Translations under genes and position numbers: made by a program
The notes under the pieces: model-generated
The model's database searches: none
What the model saw: the letters and a program-made list of their open reading frames with translations, nothing else
What the model was told of the DNA's origin: nothing
Source: Selaginella moellendorffii
Lineage: Eukaryota > Plantae > Lycopodiophyta
NCBI RefSeq assembly: GCF_000143415.4
Contig: NW_003314297.1
Coordinates: forward strand, 1,031,430-1,095,429
Direction of reading: 5' to 3'
DNA: 64,000 nt
Shown here: positions 1,688-58,906 of the stretch, piece after piece
Layout: every line of letters begins with the position of its first letter
Numbering within the stretch: position 1 is the first letter of the stretch

Positions 1688-1695
1688 TATAAATA
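1688..1695 (+). promoter_or_regulatory. TATA box of secreted peptide gene
   Basis: GCTATAAATA 80 nt upstream of the ATG; conserved in front of essentially every peptide paralogue, followed by a pyrimidine-rich ATCAAAYCACTTCTCTC Inr-like tract. Confidence 0.7.
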
Positions 1696-1767
1696 CAAGC
1701 CCCTCCCACCTCACAAATCAAACCACTTCTCTCTAATATAACAAGCTTACTTCTCTAGCAGCAAATC

Positions 1768-1965
1768 ATGGAGAACAAGGCTTTCTTCGTGTTGTTTTTG
1801 GCGCTCGCCATATTTGTCATGATGCTGGCCATGGGCGTGGACGTGGGAGGACTCGCAAAGGCTGCTGCCCAGCGCTGCCAGTCGGGGTGGTATTGGTATG
1901 ACAACGGTTGCCACCGTTGCCAGAGGGGTTGGAGCTGGCGCAACAATCGCTGCTCGCGCAACTGA
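1768..1965 (+). CDS. Secreted Cys/Trp/Arg-rich peptide precursor, 65 aa (family A, copy 1)
   Basis: ATG start, hydrophobic signal peptide, short pro-segment, mature QRCQSGWYWYDNGCHRCQRGWSWRNNRCSRN; upstream TATA; six intact copies. Confidence 0.85.
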   Translation: MENKAFFVLFLALAIFVMMLAMGVDVGGLAKAAAQRCQSGWYWYDNGCHRCQRGWSWRNNRCSRN

Positions 1966-2272
1966 AACCTCTCGTTTCATGGGGTAAGCCCAAGTTAAGA
2001 ATCAGCATCGTAATTGCCTTTGATTTTATCGTTCTGCAGTGCCAAGGGTCTGGAAACAAGAATAAAGACACTGACAACATGTTTTCTGTATCGTGCGATG
2101 TTGCATGGTATTGCTTGAGTTCCAGCAATAAAATTTAAATGTCCAAGCCTTGATATAAAATGTCTGAATCTGTCCTTGCTCCTTCCTCCAAATCCCTCTA
2201 CTTCCATTCGATTGCTCCAATGATCGGCAAGCAATAAGACTCGATTTGTGCATCAAAACCAGGCCCAGGCAT

Positions 2273-2410
2273 ACCTAGCGGTGGGAGTGGAGGTCAGGGG
2301 GATCACCAAGGCGATGGCGCAGCGGTGCCGTGGAGGATTACCTACTGGAATGGATTTCGCTGCGTGCAATGCAATTGGTACGGGTATGACAACAGCTGCC
2401 ATCGAGGGTG
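2273..2410 (+). pseudogene. Peptide paralogue family B remnant
   Basis: LAVGVEVRGITKAMAQRCRGG followed by frameshifted YWNGFRCVQCNWYGYDNSCHR; no signal peptide. Confidence 0.6.
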
Positions 2411-2571: not shown

Positions 2572-2760
2572 ATGGAGAACAAGGCTTGCCTGGTGTTGTT
2601 TTCGGTTCTCGCCATGTTGCCGACGCTGGCCATGGGAGTGGACGTGAGAGGAACCGCAAAGGCTGCTGCCCAACGCTGCCCGTCCGATAGTTGCCACCGA
2701 TGCCCTCGGCGCTGGTTACAACGAAATAGGATCGATATGAAGTTAACGGATTATGGATAA
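2572..2760 (+). pseudogene. Peptide paralogue family C (MENKACL type), mature region partly deleted
   Basis: Signal and pro region homologous to family A; RCPSDSCHRCPRRW lacks the first WxW loop; own TATA at ~2508. Confidence 0.65.
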
Positions 2761-5345: not shown

Positions 5346-6966
5346 TCACTGTTCTTATGTTTTGTCTCTTGCAGTGCCTGGCATCTATACAACTTGACTT
5401 CGAAGAAACGTACCTCGTCAAGTTCCCTGTCTCTCTCAGAGGTGGAAGAATTCACCAGGATACAGAAGGGCTCGTACCTCGTCGGCGTTTTCACCTGTCA
5501 AGAGAAGCATGCCCCGGAGCAGATGGCTCCACCTCCAAATCACTTTTGACCCGCTTGGGATCATTGACTGTCACCTTCCCGACGAGGTTCTCGTCGCTCG
5601 TGATCTCGGGGCTGTTCTCCACATCGCGCTTCCTGATCGATTCAGCTTCATCAGTCCATATTGTCAGCTCAAGTGCAGAGATTACTAACCTGTGGGAAAA
5701 AGGCCGGATGCAGGGCTCCATCATGATGAACTTCTGCATTTGTTTCTCCATCTCAGCCCGCTTCTTTGCCAGTGTAGCGACATCTCCAGAATCGAACGCG
5801 GTGCCAGAACGATCCGCCACCTTTCCATGAAACTGCTCTGGAACCCGGTCGCGTCGAGATGATAGGCGCACTGGGAGCTCGTTTGCAGCCATTTTCTCGC
5901 CTGCTGGATGATGAGAGTAGCCACCAGTCGAGAAGAGTGGATCATCCTCCGGAGTGGCTGAGAACAGCCTTCGCTGCTCGTCAACTTCATACGCAGGAAA
6001 GACGACGAGAGGATCCTCCATCGTGACGTTTTCCCGGCTTCCCTGCTGGCCATGCACTGGATCAGCAGCACGAAAGAGTGGATCGTTTTCGGATGCAGAC
6101 TTGTGGCGAGCACCAGCGGGAAGAGCAGACGGTGGCAGCCGCCTTGGTGGCCTCAGGACCTCGCGAATTCGGGAGCAGCCGCCTTCTTCCTGCCAGCATT
6201 CAGCTGCGATGATGGTCGAGGCTCCACTTGGTGCTCCCATTGGTTGCTGCTGCTGCCGCTGTTGCCACCGCTAGGCTGATGGCCATACTCCACCAGGATG
6301 TCATCGTGGTGGATGTCGCCGTGCACCTTGTTTCTTCTCCTCTTCAAGAGTATCCAGACTCCAGTGACGATGGCTACCAGTGCGAGCAGGAGCATAACGA
6401 TGCCTGCAACGAGCACACCAGGTGATGCCACGAATGCTGCTGCTGCTGCTGCTGAAGATGGTGCTGACGACGCAGTAGGCGGAGAGGTGTCCAAGCCAAG
6501 GGGCCTTGGTTGCCACGTTATGGTCGAAGGTGGTGGCGATGACGGCCCGGCCCTCCTTGGTCGCTAGGTTACAGTGTCGGCCTTGTTGGGCGGCGAAGAA
6601 GAAGGTGGCGGCCCTGTAGCAGCTTCATCACCAGTGCGTCGATGTCCATGCTCTTTGGCTCGGCTGCTGGATGTTCCTTGGTGGGCGGAGAGCTCGGTGG
6701 TGGATGTCCAGCTCCATGATGCTCGGGAGACCTCGGTGGTGCCGGAGAGCTCGGTGGTGGATGTACAGCTCGAGGTGGCTTTGTTGGTGAGCGTGTCCCT
6801 CTGTGGGCTTTGGTGGTGAATGACTGTACCTCTTGGCTGGCGCCGGTGGAGACCTCTTTGGGGGTGGAGATGAAGTTGTCCGCGCCCTCTTTGGCGATGG
6901 TTTGGGCGGCGGCATCCTCCTCGCGTGCTCCCGGTGAGGCGGCGGGGGCGGTGGTGTGCGAGCCAT
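5346..6966 (-). pseudogene. Pro-rich single-pass membrane protein, copy 2 (frameshifts and stop)
   Basis: Split over ORFs 6628..6966, 6153..6494 and 5491..6240, collinear with intact copies. Confidence 0.8.
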
Positions 6967-7512: not shown

Positions 7513-7710
7513 ATGGAGAACAAGGCTTTCTTCGTGTTGTTTTTGGCGCTCGCCATCTTTGTGATGATGCTGGCCATGGGCGTGGACGTGGGAGGACTCG
7601 CAAAGGCTGCTGCCCAGCGCTGCCAGTCGGGGTGGTATTGGTATGACAACGGTTGCCACCGTTGCCAGAGGGGTTGGAGCTGGCGCAACAATCGCTGCTC
7701 GCGCAACTGA
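7513..7710 (+). CDS. Secreted Cys/Trp/Arg-rich peptide precursor, 65 aa (family A, copy 2)
   Basis: Protein identical to 1768..1965; differs by synonymous changes. Confidence 0.85.
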   Translation: MENKAFFVLFLALAIFVMMLAMGVDVGGLAKAAAQRCQSGWYWYDNGCHRCQRGWSWRNNRCSRN

Positions 7711-8026
7711 AACCTCTCGTTTCATGGGGTAAGCCCAAGTTAAGAATCAGCATCATAATTGCCTTTGATTTTATCGTTCTGCAGTGCCAAGGGTCTGGAA
7801 ACAAGAATAAAGACAATGATAACGTGTTTTCTGTATCGTGCGATGTTGCATAGTATTGCATGAGTTCCAGCAATAAAATATAAATTGTCCAAGCCTTGAT
7901 ATAAAATGTCTGAATCTGTCCTTGGTCCTTCTCCTCTCTTCTCCAAATCCCACGACTTCCAATCGATTGTTCCAATGATCGGCAAGCAATAAGACTTGAT
8001 TGGAGCATCAAACGCAGGCCCAGGCA

Positions 8027-8165
8027 TGGAGGTCGGGGGCATCACCAAGGCGCAGCCCTTGGTACTGGAATAGATTTCGCTGCGTGCAATGCAATTGGTA
8101 CGGGTATGATAACAGCTGTCATCGAGGGTGGCGCTGGAATGGCAGCGCTGCATCTGCTGAAGAAT
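8027..8165 (+). pseudogene. Peptide paralogue family B remnant
   Basis: WYWNRFRCVQCNWYGYDNSCHRGWRWNGS within ORF 8000..8263; no signal peptide. Confidence 0.6.
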
Positions 8166-9082: not shown

Positions 9083-9250
9083 ATGGAGAACAAGGCTTGC
9101 CTGGTGTTGTTTTCGGTTCTCGCCATGTTGCTGATGCTGGCCATGGGAGTGGACGTGGGAGGAATCTCAAGCGCACTGCAGCTAGCTCCTCTAAGGGATT
9201 GTTTTGCAAATTTTGGCTACACCATGTTCTTTGAAAGTGCCTTTAAATAG
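9083..9250 (+). pseudogene. Peptide paralogue family C, mature region lost
   Basis: MENKACLVLFSVLAMLLMLAMGVDVGGI then unrelated sequence to TAG at 9250; TATA at ~9010. Confidence 0.6.
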
Positions 9251-10714: not shown

Positions 10715-11685
10715 GTCGAGATGATAGGTGCATTGGGCGCTCGTTTGCAGCCATTCTCTCGCCTGCTGGATGATGAGAGTAGCCACCAGTCGAGAAGAGT
10801 GGATCATCCTCCGGATCAGACGAGTGGCTGAGAACAGCCTTGGCTGCTCGTCAACTTCATTTGCGCAAAAGACGAGGAGAGGATCCTCCATCATGACGTT
10901 TCCCCGGCTTTTCTGCTGGCCATGCACTGGATCAGCATCACGAAAGAGTGGATCGTTTCCGGATGCAGACTTGTGGCGAGCAAGAGCATACGGTGGCAAC
11001 CGCCTTGGTGGCCTCAGGAGCTCGCGAATTCGGGGATCAGCAGCCTCCTTCTTCCTGCCGGCATTCAACTACGATGATGGTCGAGGCTCCACTTTGGTAA
11101 TGAGGTGCTCCCGCTGGTTCCTGCTGCTGCCGCTGTTGCCACCGCTAGGCTGATGGCCATACTCCACCAGGATGATGTCGCCGTGCACCTTGTTCCTTCT
11201 CCGCTTCAAGTGTATCCAGACTCCAGTAACGATGGCTACCAGTGCGAGCAGGAGCATAACGATGCCGGCCGCGAGCACACCAGGTGATGCCACGAATGCT
11301 GCTGCTGCTGCTGCTGAAGATGGTGCTGACGGCACAGTGGGCCTTGGTTTCCACGTTATGGTCGAAGGTGGTGGCGATGGCGGCCTTGGGTTCCACGTTA
11401 TGCTTGAAGGTGGTGGCGTTATGCTCGAAGGTGGTGGCGATGACGGCCCGGCCCTCCTTGGTCGCCAGGTTACAGTGTCGGCCTTGTTGGGCTGCGAAGA
11501 AGAAGGTGGCGGCCCTGTACCAGCTCGTCGATGTCCATGGTGCCTCTTTGGCTCTGCTGCTGGGTTCCTTGGTGGGCGGAGAGCTCGGTGGTGCTCAGAG
11601 CTCGGCGGTGGATGTCCAGCTCCATGATCCTCACGTGCTCCCGGTGAGGCGGCGGGGGTGGGGGTGTGGAGATTTTGTGAGCCAT
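10715..11685 (-). pseudogene. Pro-rich single-pass membrane protein, copy 3 (frameshifted, 3' end replaced)
   Basis: ORFs 11470..11685, 11069..11698, 10592..11068; homology stops at ~10715. Confidence 0.75.
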
Positions 11686-12321: not shown

Positions 12322-12519
12322 ATGGAGAACAAGGCTTTCTTCGTGTTGTTTTTGGCGCTCGCCATATTTGTCATGATGCTGGCCATGGGCGTGGACGTGG
12401 GAGGACTCGCAAAGGCTGCTGCTCAGCGCTGCCAGTCGGGGTGGTATTGGTATGTCAACAGTTGCCACTGTTGCCAGAGGGGTTGGAGCTGGCGCAACAA
12501 TCGCTGGTGGCGCAACTGA
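12322..12519 (+). CDS. Secreted Cys/Trp/Arg-rich peptide precursor, 65 aa (family A, copy 3, Cys-shift variant)
   Basis: Intact ORF; mature QRCQSGWYWYVNSCHCCQRGWSWRNNRWWRN. Confidence 0.75.
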   Translation: MENKAFFVLFLALAIFVMMLAMGVDVGGLAKAAAQRCQSGWYWYVNSCHCCQRGWSWRNNRWWRN

Positions 12520-12837: not shown

Positions 12838-12992
12838 CCTGCGGTGGGAGTGGAGGTCGGGGGCATCACCAAGGCGATGGCGCAGCCCTTGGTACTGGAA
12901 TGGATTTCGCTGCGTGCAATGCAATTGGTACAGGTATGACAAACAGCTGCCATCGAGGGTGGCGCTGGAATGGCAGCCGCTGCATCTGCTGA
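12838..12992 (+). pseudogene. Peptide paralogue family B remnant
   Basis: WYWNGFRCVQCNWYRYD then frameshift. Confidence 0.6.
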
Positions 12993-13350: not shown

Positions 13351-13572
13351 NNNNNNNNNNNNNNNNNNNNNNNNNNNNNNNNNNNNNNNNNNNNNNNNNN
13401 NNNNNNNNNNNNNNNNNNNNNNNNNNNNNNNNNNNNNNNNNNNNNNNNNNNNNNNNNNNNNNNNNNNNNNNNNNNNNNNNNNNNNNNNNNNNNNNNNNNN
13501 NNNNNNNNNNNNNNNNNNNNNNNNNNNNNNNNNNNNNNNNNNNNNNNNNNNNNNNNNNNNNNNNNNNNNNNN
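13351..13572. other. Assembly gap (N run)
   Basis: 222 consecutive N. Confidence 0.99.
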
Positions 13573-13899: not shown

Positions 13900-14061
13900 A
13901 TGGAGAACAAGGCTTGCCTGGTGTTGTTTTCGGTTCTCGCCATGTTGGTGATGCTGGCCATGGGAGTGGGCGTGGGAGGAATCGCAAAGGCTGCTGCCCA
14001 AGGCTGCCTGTCCGATAGTTGCCACCGATGCCCTCGAGGACGGCGCTGGTATGCTCTGTGA
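13900..14061 (+). CDS. Peptide paralogue family C, 53 aa, possibly degenerate
   Basis: MENKACLVLFSVLAMLVMLAMGVGVGGIAKAAAQGCLSDSCHRCPRGRRWYAL*; three Cys in the mature part; TATA at ~13827; below the ORF-track size cutoff. Confidence 0.5.
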   Translation: MENKACLVLFSVLAMLVMLAMGVGVGGIAKAAAQGCLSDSCHRCPRGRRWYAL

Positions 14062-17099: not shown

Positions 17100-18644
17100 T
17101 CACTTGGTTGTCTCTTGCAGTGCCTGCAATCAAAGAGTAGCATCTAGACAAATTGACTTCAAAGAAACGTACTTCATCAAATTCCCTGTCTCTCAAGGGT
17201 GGAAGAATTCACCAGGATACAGAAAGACTCATACCTGGTCGGCGTTTTTACGAAGCGTGCCCCGGAGCAGATGGCTCCACCTCCAAATCACTCTTGACCC
17301 GCTTGGGATCATTGGCTGTCAACTTCCGGACGAGGTTCTCGTCGCTCGTGATCTCGGGGCTGTTCTCCACATCGCGCTTCCTGATCGATTCAGCTTCATC
17401 AGTCCATATTGTCAGCTCAAGTGCAGAGACTACTAACCTGTGGGAAAAAGGCCGGATGCGGGGCTCCATCATGATGAACTTCTGCATTTGTTTCTCCATC
17501 TCAGCCCGCTTCTTTGCCAAAGCGGCGACATCTCCAGGATCGAACACGGTGCCAGAACGATGCGCCACCTCTCGTCCTTGTTCCCGTCCATGAAACTGCT
17601 CTGAAACCCCGTAGCGTCGAGATGATAGGCACACTGGGATCTCGTTTGGAGCCATTTTCTCGCCTGCTGGATGATGAGAGTAGCCACCAGTCGAGAAGAG
17701 TGGATCATCCTCCGGAGTGGCTGAGAACAGCCTTGGCTGCTCGTCAACTTCATGCGCAGGAAAGACGACGAGAGGATCCTCCATCGTGACGTTTTCCCGG
17801 CTTCCTTGCTGGCCATGCACTGGATCAGCAGCACGAAAGAGTGGATCGTTTCCGGATGCAGACTTGTGGCGAGCACCAGAGGGAAGAGCAGACGGTGGCA
17901 GCCGCCTTGGTGGCTTCAGGAGCTCGCAAATTAGGGGGTCAGCAGCCGCCTTCTTCCTGCCGGCATTCAACTGCGATGATGGTCGAGGCAATACTTTGGT
18001 CGGAGGAATATTAATGAGGTGCTCCTGCTGGCTGCTGCTGCTGCCGCTGTTGCCACCACCAGGCTCATGGCCATACTCCACCAAGATGTCGTCGTGCACC
18101 TTCTCCTCTTCAAGAGTATCCAGACTCCAGTGACGATGGCTACCAGCGTGAGCAGGAGCATGACGATGGCTGCCGCGAGCACACCAGGTGATGCCACGAA
18201 TGCTGCTGCTGCTGAAGATGGTGCTGACGACGCAGTAGGCGGAGAGGTGCCCAAGCCAAGGGGCCTTGTTATGGTCGAAGGTGGTGGCGATGGCGGCCCG
18301 GCCCTCCTTGGTGGCCAGGCTACAGTCTCGGCGAAGAAGAAGGTGGTGGCCCTGTAGCAGCTCCATCACCGGCTCGTTGATGTCCATGGTGTCTCTTTGT
18401 GGGCGGAGGGCTCGGTGGTGGATGTCCGGTTCCATGATGCTCAGGAGAACTCGCTGGTGGCTTTGCCGGTGAGTGATGTCCCTCTGTGGGCTTTGGTGGT
18501 GAATGACTGTGCCTCTTGACTGGCGCCGGCGGAGACCTCTTTGGTGGCGGAGATGAAGTTGTCGGCGCCCTCTTTGGCGATGGTTTGGGCGGCGCGTGCT
18601 CCCGGTGAGGCGGCGGCGATGGCGTGGAGATTTTTGCGAGCCAT
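17100..18644 (-). pseudogene. Pro-rich single-pass membrane protein, copy 4 (frameshifts)
   Basis: TM segment lies in a different frame (17967..18254) from the cytoplasmic tail (in 17248..18663). Confidence 0.8.
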
Positions 18645-19970: not shown

Positions 19971-20136
19971 TCAGCGGAAGCAGCGGCTGCCATTCCAGCG
20001 CCACCCTCGATGGCAGCTGTTGTCATACCCGTACCAATTGCATTGCGCGCAGCGAAATCCATCCCACTACCATCCTCCGCAGCAGCGATGCGCCATCGCC
20101 ATGGTGATCCCCCCAACCTTCACTCCCACCGCTGGG
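19971..20136 (-). pseudogene. Peptide paralogue family B, most complete remnant
   Basis: AVGVKVGGITMAMAHRCCGGW*WDGFRCAQCNWYGYDNSCHRGWRWNGSRCFR*; one in-frame TAG where other copies have TAC. Confidence 0.65.
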
Positions 20137-20454: not shown

Positions 20455-20652
20455 TCAGTTGCGCCAGCAGCGATTGTTGCGCCAGCTCCAACCCCTCTGG
20501 CAACGGTGGCAACTGTTGTCATACCAATACCACCCCGACTGGCAGCGCTGGGCAGCAGCCTTTGCGATTCCTCCCACGTCCACGCCCATGGCCAACATCA
20601 TCACAAACATGGCGAGTGCCAAAAACAACAGGAAGAAAGCCTTGTTCTCCAT
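20455..20652 (-). CDS. Secreted Cys/Trp/Arg-rich peptide precursor, 65 aa (family A, copy 4, inverted cassette)
   Basis: Intact ORF; mature QRCQSGWYWYDNSCHRCQRGWSWRNNRCWRN. Confidence 0.85.
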   Translation of the reverse strand: MENKAFFLLFLALAMFVMMLAMGVDVGGIAKAAAQRCQSGWYWYDNSCHRCQRGWSWRNNRCWRN

Positions 20653-21279: not shown

Positions 21280-22836
21280 ATGGCTCGCAAAATCTCCACG
21301 CCACCGCCCCGCCGCCTCACCGGGAGCACGCGAGGGACGCCACCGCCTAAACCATCGCCAAAGAGGGCGCCGACAACTCCATCTCCGCCACCAAAGAGGT
21401 CTCCAACGGCGCCAGCCAAGAGGCACAGTCATTCACCACCAAAGCCCACAGATGGACATCACTCACCAGCAAAGCCACCACCGAGTTCTCCTGAGCATCA
21501 TGGAGCTGGACATCCACCACCGAGCTCTCCGCCCACCAAGGAACATCGAGCAGCAGAGCCAAAGAGGCACCATGGACATCGACGAGCTGATGATGGAGCT
21601 GCTACAGGGCCGCCACCTTCTTCTTCGCCGCCCAACAAGGCCGACACTGTAACCTGGCGACCAAGGAGGGCCGGGCCATCATCGCCACCACCTTCGAGCA
21701 TAACGTGGAACCCAAGGCCGCCATCGCCACCACCTTCGACCATAACGTGGCAACCAAGGCCCCTTGGCTTGGACACCTCTCCGCCTACGGCGTCGTCAGC
21801 ACCATCTTCAGCAGCAGCAGCAGCTGCAGCTGCATTCGTGGCATCACCTGGTGTGCTCGCGGCAGGCATCGTTATGCTCCTGCTCGCACTGGTAGCTATC
21901 GTCACTGGAGTCTGGATACTCTTGAAGAGGAGAAGGAACAAGGTGCACGGCGACATCCACCACGACGACATCCTGGTGGAGGATGGCCACCAGCCTAGCG
22001 GTGGCAACAGCGGCAGCAGCAGCAACCAGCGGGAGCACCTCATTACCAAAGTGGAGCCTCGACCATCATCGCAGTTGAATGCCGGCAGGAAGAAGGCGGC
22101 TGCTGACCCCCTAATTCGCGAGCTCCTGAGGCCACCAAGGCGGCTGCCACCGTCTGCCCTTCCCGCTGGTGCTCGCCACAAGTCTGCATCCGGAAACGAT
22201 CCACTCTTTCGTGCTGCTGATCCAGTGCATGGCCAGCAGGGAAGCCGGGGAAACGTCATGATGGAGGATCCTCTCGTCGTCTTTCCTGCGTATGAAGTTG
22301 ACGAGCAGCGAAGGCTGTTCTCAACCACTCCGGAGGATGATCCACTCTTCTCGACTGGTGGCTACTCTCATCATCCAGCAGGCAAGAAAATGGCTGCAAA
22401 CGAGCTCCCAGTGCGCATATCATCTCGACGCAACGGGGTTCCAGAGCAGTTTCATGGACGGGAACAAGGACGAAAGGTGGCGGATCGTTCTGGCATCGTG
22501 TTCGATCCTGGAGATGTCGCAGCACTGGCAAAGAAGCGGGCTGAGATGGAGAAGCAAATGCAGAAGTTCATCATGATGGAGCCCCGCATCCGGCCTTTTT
22601 CCCACAGGTTAGTAGTCTCTGCACTTGAGCTGACAATATGGACTGATGAAGCTGAATCGATCAGGAAGCGCGATGTGGAGAACAGCCCCGAGATCACGAG
22701 CGACGAGAACCTCGTCCGGAAGTTGACAGCCAATGATCCCAAGCGGGTCAAGAGTGATTTGGAGGTGGAGCCATCTGCTCCGGGGCACGCGTCTCTGACG
22801 GGTGAAAACGCCGATCAGTTACGAGCCTTTCTGTGA
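21280..22836 (+). CDS. Pro-rich single-pass membrane protein, copy 5 (open ORF; probable in-frame intron 22608..22664; downstream splice sites mutated)
   Basis: 518-aa ORF: ~185-aa Pro/Ser/His-rich N-terminus with SPPP motifs, one TM helix followed by KRRR, low-complexity tail. Confidence 0.7.
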   Translation: MARKISTPPPRRLTGSTRGTPPPKPSPKRAPTTPSPPPKRSPTAPAKRHSHSPPKPTDGHHSPAKPPPSSPEHHGAGHPPPSSPPTKEHRAAEPKRHHGHRRADDGAATGPPPSSSPPNKADTVTWRPRRAGPSSPPPSSITWNPRPPSPPPSTITWQPRPLGLDTSPPTASSAPSSAAAAAAAAFVASPGVLAAGIVMLLLALVAIVTGVWILLKRRRNKVHGDIHHDDILVEDGHQPSGGNSGSSSNQREHLITKVEPRPSSQLNAGRKKAAADPLIRELLRPPRRLPPSALPAGARHKSASGNDPLFRAADPVHGQQGSRGNVMMEDPLVVFPAYEVDEQRRLFSTTPEDDPLFSTGGYSHHPAGKKMAANELPVRISSRRNGVPEQFHGREQGRKVADRSGIVFDPGDVAALAKKRAEMEKQMQKFIMMEPRIRPFSHRLVVSALELTIWTDEAESIRKRDVENSPEITSDENLVRKLTANDPKRVKSDLEVEPSAPGHASLTGENADQLRAFL

Positions 22837-32753: not shown

Positions 32754-34459
32754 TCACTTGTTCTTATGTTTTGTCTCTTGCAGTGCCTGCAATCAAAGAG
32801 TAGCATCTATACAGATTGCCTTTGAAGAAACGTACCTCGTCAAGTTCCCTGTCTCTCTCAGAGGTGGAAGAATTCACCAGGATACAGAAAGGCTCGTACC
32901 TGGTCGGCGTTTTCACCTGTCAGAGAAGCGTGCCCCGGAGCAGATGGCTCCACCTCCAAATCACTCTTGACCCGCTTGGGATCATTGGCTGTCAACTTCC
33001 GGACGAGGTTCTCGTCGCTCGTGATCTCGGGGCTGTTCTCCACATCACGCTTCCTGATTGATTCAGCTTCATCAGTTCATATTGTCAGCTCAAGTGCAGA
33101 GACTACTAACCTGTGGGAAAAAGGCCGGATGCGGGGCTCCATCATGATGAACTTCTGCATTTGTTTCTCTATCTCAGCCCGCTTCTTTGCCAGTGCTGCG
33201 ACATCTCCAGGATCGAACACGGTGCCAGAACGATCCGCCACCTTTCGTCCTTGTTCCCGTCCATGAAACTGCTCTGGAACCCGGTCGCGTCGAGATGATA
33301 GGCGCACTGGGAGCTCGTTTGCAGCCATTTTCTCGCCTGCTGGATGATGAGAGTAGCCACCAGACGAGAAGAGTGGATCATCCTCCGGAGTGGCTGAGAA
33401 CAGCCTTCGCTGCTCGTCAACTTCATACGCAGGAAAGAGGACGAGAGGATCCTCCATCATGACGTTTCCCCGGCTTCCTTGCTGGCCATGCACTGGATCA
33501 GCAGCACGAAAGAGTGGATCGTTTCCGGATGCAGACTTGTGGCGAGCATCAGCGGGAAGAGCAGACGGTGGCAGCCGCCTTGGTGGTCTCAGGAGCTCGC
33601 GAATTAGGGGGTCAGCAGCCGCCTTATTCCTGCCGGCATTCAACTGCGATGATGGTCGAGGCTCCACTTTGGTAATGAGGTGCTCCCGCTGGTTGCTGCT
33701 GCTGCCGCTGTTGCCACCGCTAGGCTGATGGCCATCCTCCACCAGGATGTCGTCGTGGTGGATGTCGCCGTGCACCTTGTTCCTTCTCCTCTTCAAGAGT
33801 ATCCAGACTCCAGTGACGATAGCTACCAGTGCGAGCAGGAGCATAACGATGCCTGCCGCGAGCACACCAGGTGATGCCACGAATGCAGCTGCAGCTGCTG
33901 CTGCTGAAGATGGTGCTGACGACGCCGTAGGCGGAGAGGTGTCCAAGCCAAGGGGCCTTGGTTGCCACGTTATGGTCGAAGGTGGTGGTGATGGCGGCCT
34001 TGGGTTCCACGTTATGGTCGAAGGTGGTGGCGATGGCGGCCTTGGGTTCCACATTATGCTCGAAGGTGGTGGCGATGACGGCCCGGCCCTCCTTGGTCGC
34101 CAGGTTACAGTGTCGGCCTTGTTGGGCGGCGAAGAAGAAGGTGACGGCCCTGTAGCAGCTCCATCACCAGCTCGTCGATGTCCATGGTGCCTCTTTGGCT
34201 CTGCTGCTGGATGTTCCTTGGTGGGCGGAGAGCTCGGTGGTGGATGTCCAGCTCCATGATGCTCAGGAGAACTCGGTGGTGGCTTTGCTGGTGAGTGATG
34301 TCCATCTGTGGGCTTTGGTGGACTGTGCCTCTTGGTTGGCGCCGGCGGAGACCTCTTTGGTGGCGGAGATGAAGTTGGCGATGGTTTGGGCGGCGGCGTC
34401 CTCCTCGCGTGCTCCCGGTGAGGCGGCGTGGGCGGTGGCGTGGAGATTTTGCGAGCCAT
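32754..34459 (-). CDS. Pro-rich single-pass membrane protein, copy 6; predicted intact 497 aa; exons 34459-33111, 33053-32972, 32916-32900, 32848-32836, 32786-32754
   Basis: Four GT-AG introns of 57, 55, 51 and 49 nt give an open frame ending DPKRVKTPTRELDEALQETKHKNK*; the apparent stop at 33077 falls inside intron 1. Confidence 0.7.
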
Positions 34460-35004: not shown

Positions 35005-35202
35005 ATGGAGAACAAGGCTTTCTTCGTGTTGTTTTTGGCACTCGCCATATTTGTGATGATGCTGGCCATGGGCGTGGACGTGGGAGGAATCGCAAAGGCT
35101 GCTGCCCAGCGCTGCCAGTCGGGGTGGTATTGGTATGACAACAGTTGCCACCGTTGCCAGAGGGGTTGGAGCTGGCGCAACAATCGCTGCTGGCGCAACT
35201 GA
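35005..35202 (+). CDS. Secreted Cys/Trp/Arg-rich peptide precursor, 65 aa (family A, copy 5)
   Basis: Intact ORF with TATA at ~34938. Confidence 0.85.
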   Translation: MENKAFFVLFLALAIFVMMLAMGVDVGGIAKAAAQRCQSGWYWYDNSCHRCQRGWSWRNNRCWRN

Positions 35203-35422: not shown

Positions 35423-35522
35423 NNNNNNNNNNNNNNNNNNNNNNNNNNNNNNNNNNNNNNNNNNNNNNNNNNNNNNNNNNNNNNNNNNNNNNNNNNNNNN
35501 NNNNNNNNNNNNNNNNNNNNNN
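35423..35522. other. Assembly gap (100 N)
   Basis: N run; the duplicated unit has only ~8 nt (CCTCCAAG) at the equivalent position. Confidence 0.99.
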
Positions 35523-35604: not shown

Positions 35605-35740
35605 CTAGCGGTGGGAGTGGAGGTCGGGAGGATCATCAAGGCGATGGCGCATCGCTGCTTCGGAGGGATGGATTTCGCTGCGCGCAATGCAATTGGTACG
35701 GGTATGGCGTGGCGCTGGAATGGCAGCCGCGGCCTCCACT
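35605..35740 (+). pseudogene. Peptide paralogue family B remnant
   Basis: Homologous to 19971..20136 with deletions. Confidence 0.55.
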
Positions 35741-36459: not shown

Positions 36460-36565
36460 CATAGGCTTGCTTGGTGTTGTTTTCGGTTCTCGCCATGTTG
36501 CAAAGGCGCTCCCTGCCACCGATGCCCTCGAGGACGGCGCTGGTATGGCGGCTCTGTGATCGTAA
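36460..36565 (+). pseudogene. Peptide paralogue family C remnant (start lost)
   Basis: ACLVLFSVLAML and CHRCPRGRRWYGG fragments; equivalent copy at ~46340-46445. Confidence 0.55.
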
Positions 36566-38719: not shown

Positions 38720-39140
38720 TGGGCGTGGAGGAGCACGTCTCCTCCTCAACCTGGGCAATGCCCTGGACGACGCCGTCCTCCGCGAGCTCCCGATCGCTGC
38801 GAGCACTGGACGATGATCCACAGGTGCGCGTGGTGCTGCTCTCGGGGAATGGCTCCAATTTCTGCTCGGGTATCGACACCAACATCCTCAGCACCAAATC
38901 CTCTTCTTCCTCTTCCTCGGCCCATGGCGATGGCGATGGCGCTCGCGGCCGCCGAGAGGGAGTCTTGGAACCACCTGATGTAGGCGCCGAATCTCTCGCC
39001 CGAGATTTGCCGCAAGCCAGTCATCGCGATGATCTATGGCGCGTGCATTGGCGCCGGGATCGATGTCATCACGGCCTGCGACGTGAGGTACTGCACTAGA
39101 GATTCACTCTTCTCCGTCAAGGAGGTGGATCTAGGACTCA
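38720..39140 (+). pseudogene. DCI1: Delta3,5-delta2,4-dienoyl-CoA isomerase (crotonase family) 5' fragment
   Basis: LDDDPQVRVVLLSGNGSNFCSGID and ICRKPVIAMIYGACIGAGIDVITACDVRYC..FSVKEVDLG; frameshifted and truncated. Confidence 0.8.
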
Positions 39141-40221
39141 TTGCCGAGAACAGCCTCCTTGCCTCCTCCAAATCTCCAGCTTGGGAATACGCTGCTAAAA
39201 TCACGTTCCATGAAATGGTATCTCGCTCTTTCATGGAATAGAACGTTGTCTTTGCACGAGAGATATTTCTATCGCCGACATACGCCGCTAGCATGGTATT
39301 CCACGTCATTGTGTCCCTTGCAAAAAAGCTCTCCACAGCATCAAAATACCTGGCCACGGCATATCCTGAAATCAAAGTTGTCCACGACACAATGTCCCAT
39401 TCTGGGCACAAATCAAACCGAGACTTGGCTCCCTCTAAGTCTCCAGCGTTAATAAATGCCGAAATCACCGCATTGTAGAAGACCACATCTTTCTCGTGCA
39501 TGGTTTGGAGCAAACGTATACATTCTACCAAATGCCCTCTTTTGCCATATGCCTGAAGCATCACCGTAAACGAGACAAGATCCCACTCGGGCATGGAATC
39601 AAAGACCCGCTTTGCTTCGGTGAGATCACCTTTCAGAGAAAACGCTTCAAGCATGGTAGTGCAGGCTAGCATGTTTCTTTCGGGCATTTTGGAGAAGAGG
39701 TCTTTAGCTCTAGCTATTAGACCCTTTTCGCAAAACGCGGCCACCATGGTTGTCCATGTAACGAGCGTCGCTTCTGGGATCCATGCAAACATACTCTCGG
39801 CGCTGGACAGATCACCCAAGTTTGCAAATCCAGATATCATGGAATTAAAGACTACAACGTTCCATCTGGGCATAAGATCAAACAACCTCTTTCCACTGCT
39901 CAAATCGCCCTTCTTTACAAACGCCTGGAGAAGTGACGCCCAGGAAACAATGTCCCTGTCCGGCATCGTATCAAACAGCTGTTTTGCCTTACGCAAATGC
40001 CCAGCATTAGCATAAGCTGCAACCAGCGTATTCCAAGTCACTCGATCTCGCAATGGCAAGACTCCAAACAGCTCCTCCGCTTGGGCAATACCTCCATTGC
40101 GGACGTAGCCCGAGAGCAGGATATTCCAAGAGTGCTGGTTGGGACACTCGAGCGTTTGAAAGGCAGAAAGGGCATCTTGGAGGCTGCCACACCTGGCATA
40201 TGCTTTGACGATTAGATTCAC
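39034..40221 (-). pseudogene. PPR protein, long open repeat tract, 3'-truncated and with 5' frameshift
   Basis: About eleven ~31-aa S-type repeats (MPDRDIVSW, MPERNMLAC, MKERDTISW); ORF starts at GTG; the likely ATG region (MDHEVITLIGR) is in another frame; the last ~35 aa are antisense DCI1. Confidence 0.75.
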
Positions 40222-42652: not shown

Positions 42653-44364
42653 TCACTTGTTCTTACGTTTTGTCTCTTGAAGTGCCTGCAATCAAAGAGT
42701 AGCATCTATACAGATTGCCTTTGAAGAAACGTACCTCGTCAAGTTCCCTGTCTCTCTCAGAGGTGGAAGAATTCACCAGGATACAGAAAGGCTCGTACCT
42801 GGTCGGCGTTTTCACCTGTCAGAGAAGCGTGCCCCGGAGCAGATGGCTCCACCTCCAAATCACTCTTGACCCGCTTGGGATCATTGGCTGTCAACTTCCG
42901 GACGAGGTTCTCGTCGCTCGTGATCTCGGGGCTGTTCTCCACATCACGCTTCCTGATCGATTCAGCTTCATCAGTTCATATTGTCAGCTCAAGTGCAGAA
43001 ACTACTAACCTGTGGGAAAAAGGCCGGATGCGGGGCTCCATCATGATGAACTTCTGCATTTGTTTCTCTATCTCAGCCCGCTTCTTTGCCAGTGTTGCGA
43101 CATCTCCAGGATCGAACACGGTGCCAGAACGATCCGCCACCTTTGGTCCTTGTTCCCGTCCATGAAACTGCTCTGGAACCCGGTCGCGTCGAGATGATAG
43201 GCGCACTGGGAGCTCGTTTGCAGCCATTTTCTCGCCTGCTGGATGATGAGAGTAGCCACCAGACGAGAAGAGTGGATCATCCTCCGGAGTGGCTGAGAAC
43301 AGCCTTGGCTGCTCGTCAACTTCATACGCAGGAAAGAGGACGAGAGGATCCTCCATCATGACGTTTCCCCGGCTTCCTTGCTGGCCATGCACTGGATCAG
43401 CAGCACGAAAGAGTGGATCGTTTCCGGATGCAGACTTGTGGCGAGCACCAGCGGGAAGAGCAGACGGTGGCAGCCGCCTTGGTGGCCTCAGGAGCTCGCG
43501 AATTAGGGGGTCAGCAGCCGCCTTCTTCCTGCCGGCATTCAACTGCGATGATGGTCGAGGCTCCACTTTGGTAATGAGGTGCTCCCGCTGGCTGCTGCTG
43601 CTGCCGCTGTTGCCACCGCTAGGCTGATGGCCATCCTCCACCAGGATGTCGTCGTGGTGGATGTCGCCGTGCACCTTGTTCCTTCTCCTCTTCAAGAGTA
43701 TCCAGACTCCAGTGACGATAGCTACCAGTGCGAGCAGGAGCATAACGATGCCTGCCGCGAGCACACCAGGTGATGCCACGAATGCAGCTGCAGCTGCTGC
43801 TGCTGCTGAAGATGGTGCTGACGACGCCGTAGGCGGAGAGGTGTCCAAGCCAAGGGGCCTTGGTTGCCACGTTATGGTCGAAGGTGGTGGTGATGGCGGC
43901 CTTGGGTTCCACGTTATGGTCGAAGGTGGTGGCGATGGCGACCTTGGGTTCCACATTATGCTCGAAGGTGGTGGCGATGACGGCCCGGCCCTCCTTGGTC
44001 GCCAGGTTACAGTGTCGGCCTTGTTGGGCGGCGAAGAAGAAGGTGACGGCCCTGTAGCAGCTCCATCACCAGCTCGTCGATGTCCATGGTGCCTCTTTGG
44101 CTCTGCTGCTGGATGTTCCTTGGTGGGCGGAGAGCTCGGTGGTGGATGTCCAGCTCCATGATGCTCAGGAGAACTCGGTGGTGGCTTTGCTGGTGAGTGA
44201 TGTCCATCTGTGGGCGAATGACTGTGCCTCTTGGTTGGCGCCGGTGGAGACCTCTTTGGTGGCGGAGATGAAGTTGTCGGCGCCCTCTTTGGCGATGGTT
44301 TGGGCGTCCTCGCGTGCTCCCGGTGAGGCGGCGGGGGCGGTGGCGTGGAGATTTTGCGAGCCAT
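42653..44364 (-). CDS. Pro-rich single-pass membrane protein, copy 7; predicted intact 499 aa; exons 44364-43010, 42952-42871, 42815-42799, 42747-42735, 42685-42653
   Basis: Same splice model as copy 6; all splice sites present; ends ELDEALQETKRKNK*. Confidence 0.7.
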
Positions 44365-44980: not shown

Positions 44981-45178
44981 ATGGAGAACAAGGCTTTCTT
45001 CGTGTTGTTTTTGGCACTCGCCATATTTGTCATGATGCTGGCCATGGGCGTGGACGTGGGAGGAATCGCAAAGGCTGCTGCGCAGCGCTGCCAGTCGGGG
45101 TGGTATTGGTATGACAACAGTTGCCACCGTTGCCAGAGGGGTTGGAGCTGGCGCAACAATCGCTGCTGGCGCAACTGA
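44981..45178 (+). CDS. Secreted Cys/Trp/Arg-rich peptide precursor, 65 aa (family A, copy 6)
   Basis: Protein identical to 35005..35202; synonymous differences only. Confidence 0.85.
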   Translation: MENKAFFVLFLALAIFVMMLAMGVDVGGIAKAAAQRCQSGWYWYDNSCHRCQRGWSWRNNRCWRN

Positions 45179-45487: not shown

Positions 45488-45640
45488 CCTAGCGGTGGGA
45501 GTGGAGGTCGGGGGCATCACCAAGGCGATGGCGCATCGCTGCTTCGGAGGGATGGATTTCGCTGCGCGCAATGCAATTGGTACGGGTATGACAACAGCTG
45601 CCATCGAGGGTGGCGCTGGAATGGCAGCCGCGGCCTCCAC
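45488..45640 (+). pseudogene. Peptide paralogue family B remnant
   Basis: LAVGVEVGGITKAMAHRCFGG then frameshift. Confidence 0.55.
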
Positions 45641-46666
45641 TGAAGAATTGCCTCGAAGAAGCGAACGAATCTCGAATCATGGAAAGTGATATATATATAT
45701 AGAATAAGAGTGAACGAAGTCTATTCTGTCAATGATAAACATGGTGCGTTTTCTGCAAAGTTGTGTGTAACGTATGGACTTTTAATATATAGGAACTTTT
45801 TTCATATAATCTAGACTCAAATTTATATTTTATATAATATTAAATATATTAAATTGGAAAAGCAACAAGATGGAAATATGACGCAGTAGTGGAGACAAAT
45901 TTGTCCAAGACAAAGTCTAGCAATTACATACCCCAACCACATATAACCTCTCTCGATCGAAAATGAAATGAAACACACATTTCTGTTCTAAAGATCGTTA
46001 AGATCCAACTATTTATTTGGATTTTTGTTCTTCCCAGTGGCAGTGAAATCTAGCGCGTGGTGATGCATGAGTTCATATATTATATAAACTGTGAAAAAAC
46101 TAAAAATGTTGTCTTTACTCATCTGGATTCACAGCTTCACTTCCTGTGTTGTTCTATGTCCCAGCATTACAGAAGAGAAAAGGAATTGACAAACACGGAA
46201 CGACTTCCTCGACTAACTTTTAAAGGACAAAGAGATGCCGTCCCAAGAGGGGCCACTCAAGCATTGTATGCTGCCTCGAGCTATAAAAATACAAGCGGCC
46301 TCACAGATCAAATCACTTCTCTCGAATATACTAGAGTTTCATAGGCTTGCTTGGTGTTGTTTTCGGTTCTCGCCATGTTGCAAAGGCGCTCCCTGCCACC
46401 GATGCCCTCGAGGACGGCGCTGGTATGGCGGCTCTGTGATCGTAAGTTTCCTCTCAGGGATTGTTTTGCAAAGTTTGGCTTGTTCTTTGAAAGCGCCTTT
46501 AAATAGGAGAGAGATGAAGAAAAAGTGGCATTGAAAAATTAGAGCAGACTACCACGCCTGTAAGCCTGTACTACCACGCAGACGTACTGATTCAAGCCTC
46601 TAGAACGCGGCAGTCAGCGCTGCCCGGTCCTGCTGGTCGGGCAGTAGTCCCCCCGCCTCACCACGG

Positions 46667-48593: not shown

Positions 48594-49020
48594 TGGGCGT
48601 GGAGGAGCACGTCTCCTCCTCAACCTGGGCAATGCCCTGGACGACGCCGTCCTCCGCGAGCTCCCGATCGCTGCGAGCACTGGACGATGATCCACAGGTG
48701 CGCGTGGTGCTGCTCTCGGGGAATGGCTCCAATTTCTGCTCGGGTATCGACACCAACATCCTCAGCACCAAATCCTCTTCTTCCTCTTCCTCGGCCCATG
48801 GCGATGGCGATGGCGATGGCGCTCGCGGCCGCCGAGAGGGAGTCTTGGAACCACCTGATGTAGGCGCCGAATCTCTCGCCCGAGATTTGCCGCAAGCCAG
48901 TCATCGCGATGATCTATGGCGCGTGCATTGGCGCCGGGATCGATGTCATCACGGCCTGCGACGTGAGGTACTGCACTAGAGATTCACTCTTCTCCGTCAA
49001 GGAGGTGGATCTAGGACTCA
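48594..49020 (+). pseudogene. DCI1: Dienoyl-CoA isomerase 5' fragment
   Basis: Duplicate of 38720..39140. Confidence 0.8.
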
Positions 49021-50101
49021 TTGCCGAGAACAGCCTCCTTGCCTCCTCCAAATCTCCAGCTTGGGAATACGCTGCTAAAATCACGTTCCATGAAATGGTA
49101 TCTCGCTCTTTCATGGAATAGAACGTTGTCTTTGGACGAGAGATATTTCTATCGCCGACATACGCCGCTAGCATGGTATTCCACGTCATTGTGTCCCTTG
49201 CAAAAAAGCTCTCCACAGCATCAAAATACCTGGCCACGGCATATCCTGAAATCAAAGTTGTCCACGACACAATGTCCCATTCTGGGCACAAATCAAACCG
49301 AGACTTGGCTCCCTCTAAGTCTCCAGCGTTAATAAATGCCGAAATCACCGCATTGTAGAAGACCACATCTTTCTCGTGCATGGTTTGGAGCAAACGTATA
49401 CATTCTACCAAATGCCCTCTTTTGCCATATGCCTGAAGCATCACCGTAAACGAGACAAGATCCCACTCGGGCATGGAATCAAAGACCCGCTTTGCTTCGG
49501 TGAGATCACCTTTCAGAGAAAACGCTTCAAGCATGGTAGTGCAGGCTAGCATGTTTCTTTCGGGCATTTTGGAGAAGAGGTCTTTAGCTCTAGCTATTAG
49601 ACCCTTTTCGCAAAACGCGGCCACCATGGTTGTCCATGTAACGAGCGTCGCTTCTGGGATCCATGCAAACATACTCTCGGCGCTGGACAGATCACCCAAG
49701 TTTGCAAATCCAGATATCATGGAATTAAAGACTACAACGTTCCATCTGGGCATAAGATCAAACAACCTCTTTCCACTGCTCAAATCTCCCTTCTTTACAA
49801 ACGCCTGGAGAAGTGACGCCCAGGAAACAATGTCCCTGTCCGGCATCGTATCAAACAGCTGTTTTGCCTTACGCAAATGCCCAGCATTAGCATAAGCTGC
49901 AACCAGCGTATTCCAAGTCACTCGATCTCGCAATGGCAAGACTCCAAACAGCTCCTCCGCTTGGGCAATACCTCCATTGCGGACGTAGCCCGAGAGCAGG
50001 ATATTCCAAGAGTGCTGGTTGGGACACTCGAGCGTTTGAAAGGCAGAAAGGGCATCTTGGAGGCTGCCACACCTGGCATATGCTTTGACGATTAGATTCA
50101 C
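48914..50101 (-). pseudogene. PPR protein repeat tract, truncated
   Basis: Duplicate of 39034..40221 (one amino acid difference visible). Confidence 0.75.
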
Positions 50102-51165: not shown

Positions 51166-52292
51166 TGTAAGCGACTAAATTTTCCATTCTACTTTAGTCA
51201 CTTAACCACACCTCTTACCACTTGGAGGAGTCTCATTCACAACCTCCATAAGTCCAATCCAGGACTTGGGACTTGCTAGCCCCGAGAATGGCATCCATGC
51301 CACTCAACATTTGCACTTGGTCCAAGTGCACCACGTGTCCGATCCCATGACCGACACTCAAAGGTACCACCGACATAGCAGCCCGTTGCGCTAAGGCCAT
51401 GCCCAATCACCTTTGCCCCACTAGTAGTCCAATACCACTTGCATCACAGTCTTGGCTCTCCAAGACCAGGCAAACCATCCGTGAGTGGTCATCTCAGATC
51501 CACTCCTTAGCATCCTTAGGATGCCCACCGACAAGGGGAATAGCCTTCCCCAATATCCCTCTGTCAATCCCCACTAAGTCCCTTTCTGCCCCTGGCCGTG
51601 TTTGCCGACACTGCCACTGGATCGAGGCCCATAGGCCCGACCACTAAGTCCCACGGTCCACTGGGACTTCCTCACCACACGACTGTGTCCTTGGTCACTA
51701 CCCCAGAGGACTGCTCCTCTTCCTTTCCACAGTCTGGTCCTTTGGGACAACATTTCGGAACACCGTGGCCTTACGCGAGCCACCTGGGTACTCTCCTCGC
51801 CTTCTGCCCTTGGGTGCTCTAGCCATGGGCTTAGAGCGGGTTCCGTTGAGCCACACCAGGTATCCAAGTAGGTAGTGCCACCCACACTTGGACTGGGAGC
51901 ATCGGCCAGTCGATCTCCCGGGGGAACTAGAGCCGGCTCTTGAACACTTCACCAAGCTACCCTGCTTGTCGGTCTGTGTTCACTCTAGTCTTGGACTTCC
52001 CAGTGGGCAGCTCATCACCCAACACTGGGTCCGGCCTTCCTGGGCCAAACTGGCCTTTCCTGGCCAAACTGGCTCCACTGCAGTCCTCCCCCTTACTATA
52101 CTTTTGGAGCTCACCAAACCCCCCAGGGTCTGGGAGACGAACGCTTTGGGCTTTCACCCTCTCAGGCTCCGGACTCGGACTCGGACTCGGACTCGGACTC
52201 GGACTCGGACTCGGACTCGGACTCGGACTCGGATTCGGACTCGGACTCGGCCTCGGGCTCGGTCTCGGCCTTGGCCTCGGTCTCGGTCCCGA

Positions 52293-52324
<32 letters not shown>

Positions 52325-53032
52325 CCGGTCTCGGTCTCGACTTCGGACTCCATCTCGGACTCCATCTCGGACTCCATCTCGGACTCCATCTCGGACTCCA
52401 TCTCGGGTCCATCTCGGGTCCATCTCGGACTCCATCTCGGGTCCATCTCGGACTCCATCTCGGACTCCATCTCGGGTCCATCTCGGACTCCATCTCGGGT
52501 CCATCTCGGACTCCATTTCGGGTCCATCTCGGGTCCACCTCGGACTCCATCTCGGACTCCATCTCGGACTCCATCTCGGGTCCATCTCGGACTCCACTTC
52601 GGACTCCAACTCGGGTCCATCTCGGGTCCACCTCGGACTCCACTTCGGACTCCATCTCGGGTCCATCTCGGACTCCACTTCGGACTCCAACTCGGGTCCA
52701 TCTCGGACTCCACTTCGGACTCCAACTCAGGTCCATCTCGGACTCCAACTCGGGTCCATCTCGGACTCCACTTCGGACTCCAACTCGAGTCCATCTCGGA
52801 CACTCCCACGTGTCATGTGTTGGTCCTTTTGGGTCCCTTTTTGGAGCCTCGCCTTTTGCTCGCTTCGTGCTCGTTCCTCGAGCACTTCGTTGGGAGTTCC
52901 ACTCCCGCTCTTGACTTTTCAAGTTGGAGCTTTTGGTCCAAACGTGTTACGCTCGTTTGGCTCTCGCTTCGGCCACTACCATGTGGCGCCCCTCTGGCTC
53001 CACTTTGGGGCCTAGGGATTTTGTGTCTCACA
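51166..53032 (-). repeat. 3' LTR (1867 bp)
   Basis: TGTAAGCG..TCTCACA; adjacent PPT-like ATGGGTGGTGGAGT (minus strand) at 53033-53046. Confidence 0.92.
52170..52800. repeat. Compound satellite in LTR: (GGACTC)n, (GGTCTC)n, then 12-mer (TCGGACTCCATC / TCGGGTCCATC)n
   Basis: Directly visible; second copy at 58032-58674. Confidence 0.97.
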
Positions 53033-58166: not shown

Positions 58167-58198
<32 letters not shown>

Positions 58199-58906
58199 CC
58201 GGTCTCGGTCTCGACTTCGGACTCCATCTCGGACTCCATCTCGGACTCCATCTCGGACTCCATCTCGGACTCCATCTCGGGTCCATCTCGGGTCCATCTC
58301 GGACTCCATCTCGGGTCCATCTCGGACTCCATCTCGGACTCCATCTCGGGTCCATCTCGGACTCCATCTCGGGTCCATCTCGGACTCCATTTCGGGTCCA
58401 TCTCGGGTCCACCTCGGACTCCATCTCGGACTCCATCTCGGACTCCATCTCGGGTCCATCTCGGACTCCACTTCGGACTCCAACTCGGGTCCATCTCGGG
58501 TCCACCTCGGACTCCACTTCGGACTCCATCTCGGGTCCATCTCGGACTCCACTTCGGACTCCAACTCGGGTCCATCTCGGACTCCACTTCGGACTCCAAC
58601 TCAGGTCCATCTCGGACTCCAACTCGGGTCCATCTCGGACTCCACTTCGGACTCCAACTCGAGTCCATCTCGGACACTCCCACGTGTCATGTGTTGGTCC
58701 TTTTGGGTCCCTTTTTGGAGCCTCGCCTTTTGCTCGCTTCGTGCTCGTTCCTCGAGCACTTCGTTGGGAGTTCCACTCCCGCTCTTGACTTTTCAAGTTG
58801 GAGCTTTTGGTCCAAACGTGTTACGCTCGTTTGGCTCTCGCTTCGGCCACTACCATGTGGCGCCCCTCTGGCTCCACTTTGGGGCCTAGGGATTTTGTGT
58901 CTCACA
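57028..58906 (-). repeat. 5' LTR (1879 bp)
   Basis: Matches 51166-53032 apart from two extra GGACTC units, as far as can be seen by eye. Confidence 0.92.

Follow-up and report, generated by a model that had tools for sequence, protein, structure and literature searches.

What is encoded by the short open reading frame (ORF) at positions 1768-1965 of a 64-kb stretch of the Selaginella moellendorffii genome, and what might its product do? The stretch (contig NW_003314297.1, positions 1,031,430 to 1,095,429; "the window" below means this whole stretch of 64,000 nucleotides) had been read in a first-pass annotation, made from the letters alone, as holding an ORF for a signal peptide followed by a VDVGG(L/I)AKAAA spacer and two 14-residue units of the form R-C-Q-x-G-W-x-W-x-x-N-x-C, and precisely this arrangement is found at 1768-1965 on the + strand. 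The reading frame, its copies, their conserved signals and the transcription of the locus identify it as a functional, unannotated lycophyte gene. The family to which it belongs is undescribed and lineage-restricted, its kind is the well-known one of secreted plant cysteine-rich peptides, and its mini-module is of a type that has precedents. The product may be an extracellular defence effector, a reading weighed below against several others.

The coding sequence (1768..1965, + strand, with the TGA stop codon included) specifies a 65-amino-acid precursor that runs from a short polar start through a 17-residue hydrophobic core, A-M-G, VDVGGLAKAAA and a single Q to RCQSGWYWYDNGCH and RCQRGWSWRNNRCS, ending in RN. 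Residues 1-23 (1768..1836) form a putative signal peptide, as judged from the hydrophobicity profile and by eye: the 9-residue Kyte-Doolittle mean is 2.2-3.3 for segments starting at residues 4-16, and A-M-G stands directly before V24 behind the hydrophobic core. With the -3/-1 rule, likewise applied by eye, the signal peptide is probably cut after A21-M22-G23 (G23|V24) rather than after AAA; for a cut at AAA|Q the signal peptide would have to be 34 residues long and its c-region 11. The cut at G23|V24 would mean that the earlier idea of an N-terminal Gln after AAA, cyclised to pyroglutamate, requires a second processing step. The VDVGGLAKAAA stretch at residues 24-34 (1837..1869) is a spacer or possible propeptide; it is common to all subtypes, to the relics and to an annotated protein described below (XP_024531936.1), and would therefore be part of the mature peptide or of a propeptide.

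Counted from Q35, the peptide has 31 residues, a mass of 3964 Da, a pI of 9.7 and a net charge of about +4.8. Hairpin unit 1 covers residues 36-49 (1873..1914) and hairpin unit 2 residues 50-63 (1915..1956); the two are identical at 8 of 14 residues and 25 of 42 bases, and together they give the cysteine spacing C-x10-C-x2-C-x10-C. The motif residues C, G, W, W, N and C are kept in both units and throughout the subtypes. A composition rich in Trp and Arg, with at most one acidic residue in 31, had been noted, and the peptide contains 4 Trp, 2 Tyr, 6 Arg and 1 Asp. The repeat strings quoted at that stage, with DNSCH and RCW, turned out to be those of the paralogues at 35005-35202, 44981-45178 and 20455-20652 (- strand); the copy at 1768 reads DNGCH and RCS instead (G47, S63).

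The layout of the gene is that of a TATA promoter, a single coding exon and a 56-nt intron within the 3' untranslated region (UTR). A TATA box, TATAAATA, can be read at 1688..1695 (+), 80 nt upstream of the ATG, and GCTATAAATA is present 59-80 nt upstream of the ATG in all six copies found in the window. The 5'UTR is minimal as drawn (1757..1767, +), RNA contigs and reads starting at or before 1757, so that the true start may lie further upstream. The intron (1984..2039, +, GT..AG) begins 19 nt past the stop codon and is supported by junction reads or contigs in three RNA runs, with read depth falling from 276 to 5 inside it; the corresponding 56-nt GTAAG...CAG element lies 19 nt past the stop in 6 of 6 copies. 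Nonsense-mediated decay is governed by a 50-55-nt rule, and an intron only 19 nt past the stop should thus not trigger it. Two AATAAA motifs, again present in every copy, follow at 2061..2066 (the first poly(A)-type signal) and at 2127..2132 (+), with an RNA contig from run X2 extending to at least 2140.

The transcription of the locus was followed chiefly in X24, a stranded RNA-seq run of 2026 of which about 12% was read, and in the runs X1 and X2. In X24, 761 of 9.2 million records map to 1450-2650; depth is 0 before 1737, rises to 656 across the coding sequence and falls to 5 within 1983-2023. All first mates in X24 lie on the - strand, which places the RNA on the + strand. The splice at 1984-2039 is seen in junction reads and contigs of X24, X1 and X2, and a larger set of X24 junction reads (68) comes from paralogues that have this intron but a second exon shorter by 18 nt. 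Contigs from X2 are identical to the copy at 1768 over 1757-1982, including the codons for L29, G47 and S63, and since they match without any difference the L29/G47/S63 isoform is itself expressed; a 3'UTR piece from the same run is nearer the copy at 7513 than that at 1768. The first-pass annotation had made its proposal depend on a transcript being found, and the transcript proves to be abundant, stranded and spliced. As a separate observation, run X1, which is labelled as a different organism (A), contains hundreds of near-identical transcript fragments for 1450-2650 at very high word depth; these come either from a close relative, from the same species under another label, or from contamination.

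Six full-length copies of the gene lie in the window. By sequence comparison, the paralogue at 7513..7710 (+) encodes an identical protein with 2 synonymous differences, while that at 12322..12519 (+) carries D45V, R50C, C62W and S63W, which disturb the cysteine pattern, and is probably defective. The remaining three are of the I29/S47/W63 type: 20455..20652, in inverted orientation (-), 35005..35202 (+), and 44981..45178 (+), the last encoding the same protein as 35005. Each duplicated unit contains a trio made up of the two-unit gene (A), a relic B lacking the signal peptide and carrying a frameshift or stop, and a relic C. In unit 1, relic B (2275..2405, +) is of a three-unit subtype without signal peptide and with a frameshift, and its counterparts, recognised by sequence, lie at 8023-8155, 12841-12983, 19974-20132 (-), 35605-35730 and 45489-45631. 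Relic C of unit 1 (2572..2760, +) has kept the signal peptide and spacer, has lost the GWxW core by deletion and shows no RNA depth; its counterparts lie at 9083-9250, 13900-14061, 36508-36546 and 46388-46426. What few reads fall on relic B derive from intact relatives at other places in the genome, and their loose ends encode ...QRCRRGW... and ...CQRGWRWNGS....

Gene A is open in 6 of 6 units and has four correctly spaced cysteines in 5 of 6. Selection on A would be expected to leave just this picture, an open frame in every unit beside decayed copies of B and C. Its coding sequences are 95-99% identical between copies (1-5% difference), whereas in the flanks (300 nt upstream, 400 nt downstream) 4-15% of aligned columns differ and indels are numerous; in 13 of 15 copy pairs, which are not independent of each other, the contrast between coding and flanking divergence reaches Fisher p < 0.05. 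The copies in the window have been amplified by tandem segmental duplication, and the family is a lineage-restricted one evolving by birth and death, its members varying in module number. The tandem array is interrupted by runs of N (assembly gaps) at 13351-13572 and 35423-35522, so that the number and order of its copies may not be fully resolved there.

Searches for relatives returned little. The exact protein is missing from a collection of about 15 billion proteins, which does contain the product of the neighbouring gene at 21280-22833 (drawn from NCBI nr); with the neighbour listed and the peptide not, the peptide gene is simply unannotated. A Pfam scan of two isoforms with E up to 10 gave nothing above cut-off, the noise hits POPLD, Sar8_2 and DUF4215 all lying far below it. 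A word-index protein search with the 65-residue precursor returned no candidates, not even the precursor itself, a PDB sequence search with precursor and core gave insignificant pattern matches only, and a feature search of the ESM Atlas gave no usable match. HMMER, run over all of 1.84 billion cluster representatives, yielded four matches, and the sole plant relative among them is the N-terminus of S. moellendorffii XP_024531936.1, "putative pectinesterase 11" (P0001; E 7e-7, 57% identity). Residues 1-53 of this protein comprise a signal peptide, VDVGGIANAAA and one hairpin unit, QQRCKSGWNWDGHKCIQCPKG; there follow an acidic, Asp-rich linker and a pectinesterase domain (residues 90-353; PF01095, E 4e-59). 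Going by the sequence, it would be either the product of a genuine exon capture or a gene model that is chimeric.

Two low-complexity repeat proteins among the matches (P0002 and P0004) were rejected by eye. The fourth, P0003, is of a type with only three known members (P0003, P0005 and P0007), proteins of 83-85 residues with the pattern C-x11-C-x2-C-x11-C and a C-terminal membrane anchor. They lie on compact, Shine-Dalgarno-bearing, virus-like or prokaryotic metagenome contigs (L001:2624-2875, +; L002:5014-5268, +). In their core, GWYWYDNACHRC, 11 of 12 positions agree with the plant peptide (E 2.6e-4 in the scan of 1.84 billion proteins), and P0003 and P0005 score 16.5-16.9 bits against CBM_14 (PF01607), whose cut-off is 22.1 bits. 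This likeness reflects either convergence on a stable hairpin or a real link, and in either case it gives the plant family no name. In the literature on Selaginella peptides no description of the family was found, most subscription journals lying outside that search.

The window peptide thus shows the features that define an unnamed Selaginella family of Trp/Cys hairpin repeats, namely a signal peptide, a VDVGG...AAA spacer and C-x2-G-W-x-W-x4-C units, and the earlier statement that no described family claims it is borne out by Pfam (none above cut-off), by PDB sequences (none significant) and by the single unnamed plant relative among 1.84 billion proteins. The further claim that the scaffold itself is unrecognised holds for the family, for which there is no significant match; it does not hold at the level of the module, where C-x2-G-aromatic-...-C hairpins are known, all the look-alikes being weak.

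In AlphaFold2 models of both the 42-residue form with spacer (mean pLDDT 74) and the 31-residue core (mean pLDDT 85), the same two hairpins are predicted: strands WYWY and GCHR with a D-N turn in unit 1, and strands WSWR and RCSR with an N-N turn in unit 2, the spacer of the longer form being modelled as a helix. The invariant Asn of the motif is placed in the turn; Asn, Asp and Gly favour tight beta-turns, and the turn residues here fit. Two beta-hairpins had been expected from the first reading of the sequence, and two separate AlphaFold2 jobs predict them. The models do not bear out a fold of the arenicin/tachyplesin type, having two separate hairpins with four-residue strands and not a single long hairpin of 17-21 residues. 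A single long arenicin-like hairpin (C1-C4, C2-C3), which the symmetric spacing would allow, was likewise set aside on account of the predicted turns inside each unit and the varying unit number. The favoured pairing is probably C1-C2 and C3-C4, because unit number varies, because look-alike modules close on themselves, and because the modelled turn lies inside each unit. There is one unit in XP_024531936.1, two are present here, and three occur in the subtype known from its relics and, for part of its length, from reads of relatives at other loci; this variable number fits self-contained modules with a single disulfide each.

Foldseek, VIA-align and atlas shape searches with both models found nothing significant, and what follows concerns weak matches. 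The cysteine-rich domain (CRD) of mGluR superposes on the 31-residue core with TMq 0.6-0.69 and a root-mean-square deviation (rmsd) of 1.5-2.0 A, at a Foldseek E above 2. TNFR-like UL144 gives Z 2.4 and rmsd 1.9 A over 31 residues, Elapor1 gives Z 2.3, and the CBM14 of chitotriosidase gives Z 2.2-2.3 and rmsd 1.9 A over 30 residues. Taken over the full 31 residues, the TNFR, furin-like and NCD3G CRDs superpose at rmsd 1.5-2.5 A with a weak Z of at most 2.4. R-spondin furin repeats, the EphA2 CRD and C-type-lectin N-termini are further weak matches. In the atlas shape search a cluster bearing DUF5874 is listed in row 10 (TM 0.38, 19 residues); DUF5874 (PF19202) is not among the Pfam matches of the two-unit peptide at E up to 10. 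If the models are right, the common denominator of these weak matches is a stack of small disulfide-stapled hairpins.

Known systems resemble the peptide in parts. The TNFR (A1), furin-like (R-spondin Fu, EGFR/Elapor1) and class-C GPCR (NCD3G, mGluR CRD) modules share a C-x2-G-aromatic-...-C repeat with a C-x2-C junction, and the PDB search gave a weak sequence alignment with R-spondin-2, KCKSGFYSHKGQC. Those modules, however, sit within large receptor ectodomains and have mostly interlocked disulfides, whereas the peptide is a free, two-module, Trp/Arg-rich product of a plant; the modelled resemblance is at best a weak one at module level, with no Pfam match, and claims no common descent. In the long-form C-type lectin domains (CTLDs) the beta0-beta1 hairpin is closed by its own disulfide, and the hairpins of TNFR A1, furin-like and mGluR cysteine-rich modules and of CBM14 likewise have a single one. 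A stretch of the snake lectin subunit convulxin alpha, HCPSDWYYYDQHCYR, aligns with RCQSGWYWYDNGCHR of unit 1 with near-identical spacing and residues, though at E 2-5 and so not significantly, and Lectin_C clusters and the N-termini of snaclecs or NKp80 are among the weak structural matches. In the long-form CTLDs the hairpin is a 13-15-residue N-terminal appendage of a 120-residue domain whose remainder the peptide lacks, and PF00059 (C-type lectin) does not match it; the two have most likely converged on a stable mini-hairpin.

Hevein (CBM18) and tachycitin/peritrophin-A (CBM14) share with the peptide an aromatic-x-aromatic pair on a disulfide-fixed hairpin, and S-x-W-x-W in unit 1 recalls the S19/W21/W23 sugar-binding motif of hevein. 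They differ in having 6-10 cysteines against 4 here, in other spacing and in a CC doublet that the peptide lacks, and neither PF00187 nor PF01607 matched the window peptide at E up to 10. Among antimicrobial peptides (AMPs), tachyplesin, arenicin and protegrin, and likewise indolicidin, tritrpticin and the puroindoline Trp domain, share small size, basic charge, high Trp/Arg content, secretory precursors and disulfide-stabilised beta-structure, but they are single hairpins with cross-strand disulfide ladders or linear peptides, come from animals or cereals, and show no sequence similarity to it. Defensins, thionins, NCRs and snakins share the signal peptide, a small Cys-rich mature part, tandem birth-and-death arrays and high expression; they differ in cysteine pattern and lack variable 14-residue modules, and the peptide family comes so far from one lycophyte. 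Profiles for plant defensin, thionin, snakin/GASA, RALF, knottin and alpha-hairpinin gave no match at E up to 10, and their cysteine arrangements, such as those of the 8-Cys defensin, the 12-Cys snakin and the CX3C...CX3C alpha-hairpinin, differ.

As to function, the signal peptide, probably cut at G23|V24, would direct the precursor into the secretory pathway, and the released product would be a strongly basic mini-protein of 4-5 kDa. Its core would be a pair of 14-residue modules in tandem, each folding into a short beta-hairpin (strands GWxW and xCxR, Asn-containing turn) with its own disulfide, with the WxW residues on one face of each hairpin and Arg around them. We infer, with about an even chance of being right, that the product is an extracellular defence effector that binds microbial surfaces (anionic membranes, or chitin and other glycans) through exposed Trp, Tyr and Arg. 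Anionic membranes would be bound through Arg and Trp, or chitin and glycans through the WxW platform. Defence is preferred to a hormone-like role because the mRNA level is very high, the copies are amplified in tandem and undergo birth and death, the surface is basic and rich in Trp, Tyr and Arg, and the destination is presumably extracellular; a charge of +4.8 with 6 aromatic and 6 Arg residues in 31 is a composition of the defence type. A more far-reaching and tentative proposal, to which we give somewhat less than even chances, is that the 14-residue Trp hairpin is a lycophyte-specific, freely stackable mini-module, forming a defence or lectin scaffold unrelated by descent to the described plant AMP families and acting by antimicrobial or chitin/glycan binding. 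Were this true, the peptide, with its own disulfide in each unit, would be a naturally modular scaffold.

Several observations weigh against this preferred explanation. Most X24 reads are 95-99% identical to the copy at 1768 and carry L29I and S63W, and their 5' and 3' ends fit no copy in the window, so that much of the depth would come from paralogues elsewhere or from another accession. Gene conversion could contribute to the high identity of the coding sequences, and the comparison of dN/dS between copy groups amounts to 3 nonsynonymous and 2 synonymous changes, which carry no statistical power. The AlphaFold2 alignments were shallow, with 6-7 rows that are mostly paralogues, and their output is a prediction and not evidence of fold. 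The pectinesterase fusion of a related module, finally, points to the plant's own wall and not to microbes.

That last point leads to another reading, unlikely in our view, in which the Trp-rich hairpins are a miniature carbohydrate-binding module for the plant's own wall (pectin, cellulose or hemicellulose) that alters the wall or anchors or modulates wall enzymes. The sole annotated relative does fuse the same signal peptide, spacer and one unit to a pectinesterase domain (PF01095, E 4e-59), but the gene model behind it may have joined a pectinesterase gene to the relic of a peptide gene. The WxW residues, on one face of a strand, would form a planar aromatic platform as in carbohydrate-binding modules, with S-x-W-x-W recalling hevein; the CBM14 of chitotriosidase (Z 2.2) is among the weak look-alikes and the metagenomic P0003 has a sub-threshold CBM_14 match, yet every structural match is insignificant. 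The strongly positive charge, the extreme expression and the fast turnover of copies are more what one sees in defence peptides, and the two readings partly overlap, chitin binding being also a matter of defence. Alternatively, the small, secreted-type, Cys-rich product could be a signalling ligand like EPF, RALF or LURE, perhaps sensed by a proline-rich single-pass membrane protein, a copy of whose gene lies head-to-head with every peptide copy at 0.5-1 kb; receptor and ligand CRDs (R-spondin, TNFR) are also among the look-alikes. We consider this improbable: one duplicated segment explains the pairing, the neighbour has no kinase or other recognisable domain, and peptide hormones are usually low-copy and weakly expressed, whereas the peptide here is multi-copy with very abundant mRNA. 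In units 1-3, moreover, the membrane-protein gene is frameshifted where the peptide gene is intact, which argues against an obligate pair.

It would be far less probable still that the ORF is transcribed but without function, its RNA being young and repeat-borne and its peptide either never made or of no use. The ORF is unannotated, its relatives are confined to one species, many copies have decayed, and the copy at 12322 has a broken cysteine pattern. Against these stand a frame that is open in 6 of 6 units while adjacent relics and flanks decay, the retention of C, G, W, W, N and C between units and subtypes, and a TATA box, poly(A) signals, efficient splicing and a predicted signal peptide of canonical form.

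The surroundings of the peptide genes are PPR-rich, which together with the relative XP_024531936.1 fits an origin of the window from S. moellendorffii. The proline-rich (SPPP-type) single-pass membrane protein, of 460-518 residues, is encoded by gene copies at 21280-22836 (+), 33077-34459 (-) and 42976-44364 (-), and broken copies, all on the - strand, lie at 3-1026, 5463-6921, 10716-11644 and 17251-18634. No Pfam domain and no kinase was found in it, and one copy is annotated in NCBI nr (P0006). Two PPR ORFs of about 395 residues (39034-40221 and 48914-50101, both -) lie inside a duplicated segment of about 9.9 kb together with the peptide copies at 35005 and 44981. A 12-nt minisatellite (unit CTCGGACTCCAT, about 54 copies) is found at 52170-52801 and 58032-58675, within a 5.9-kb element repeated three times (at about 51157, 57019 and 63053), and the repetition alone accounts for its long ORFs.

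No living lineage of vascular plants is older than the lycophytes, and to our knowledge hardly any of their defence peptides have been described. The gene is among the abundantly transcribed ones in the runs examined and is nevertheless unannotated, so that, in a model lycophyte, a plentiful and presumably secreted group of peptides has been overlooked. Should its target be the wall of the plant itself, at which the pectinesterase fusion hints, the product would be an unusually small carbohydrate-binding module. If it is antimicrobial or sugar-binding, it would represent a new plant family in which the unit is a 14-residue, self-stapled Trp hairpin used in variable numbers, an attractive minimal scaffold for structural work and for the study of how repeat peptides are born and die.

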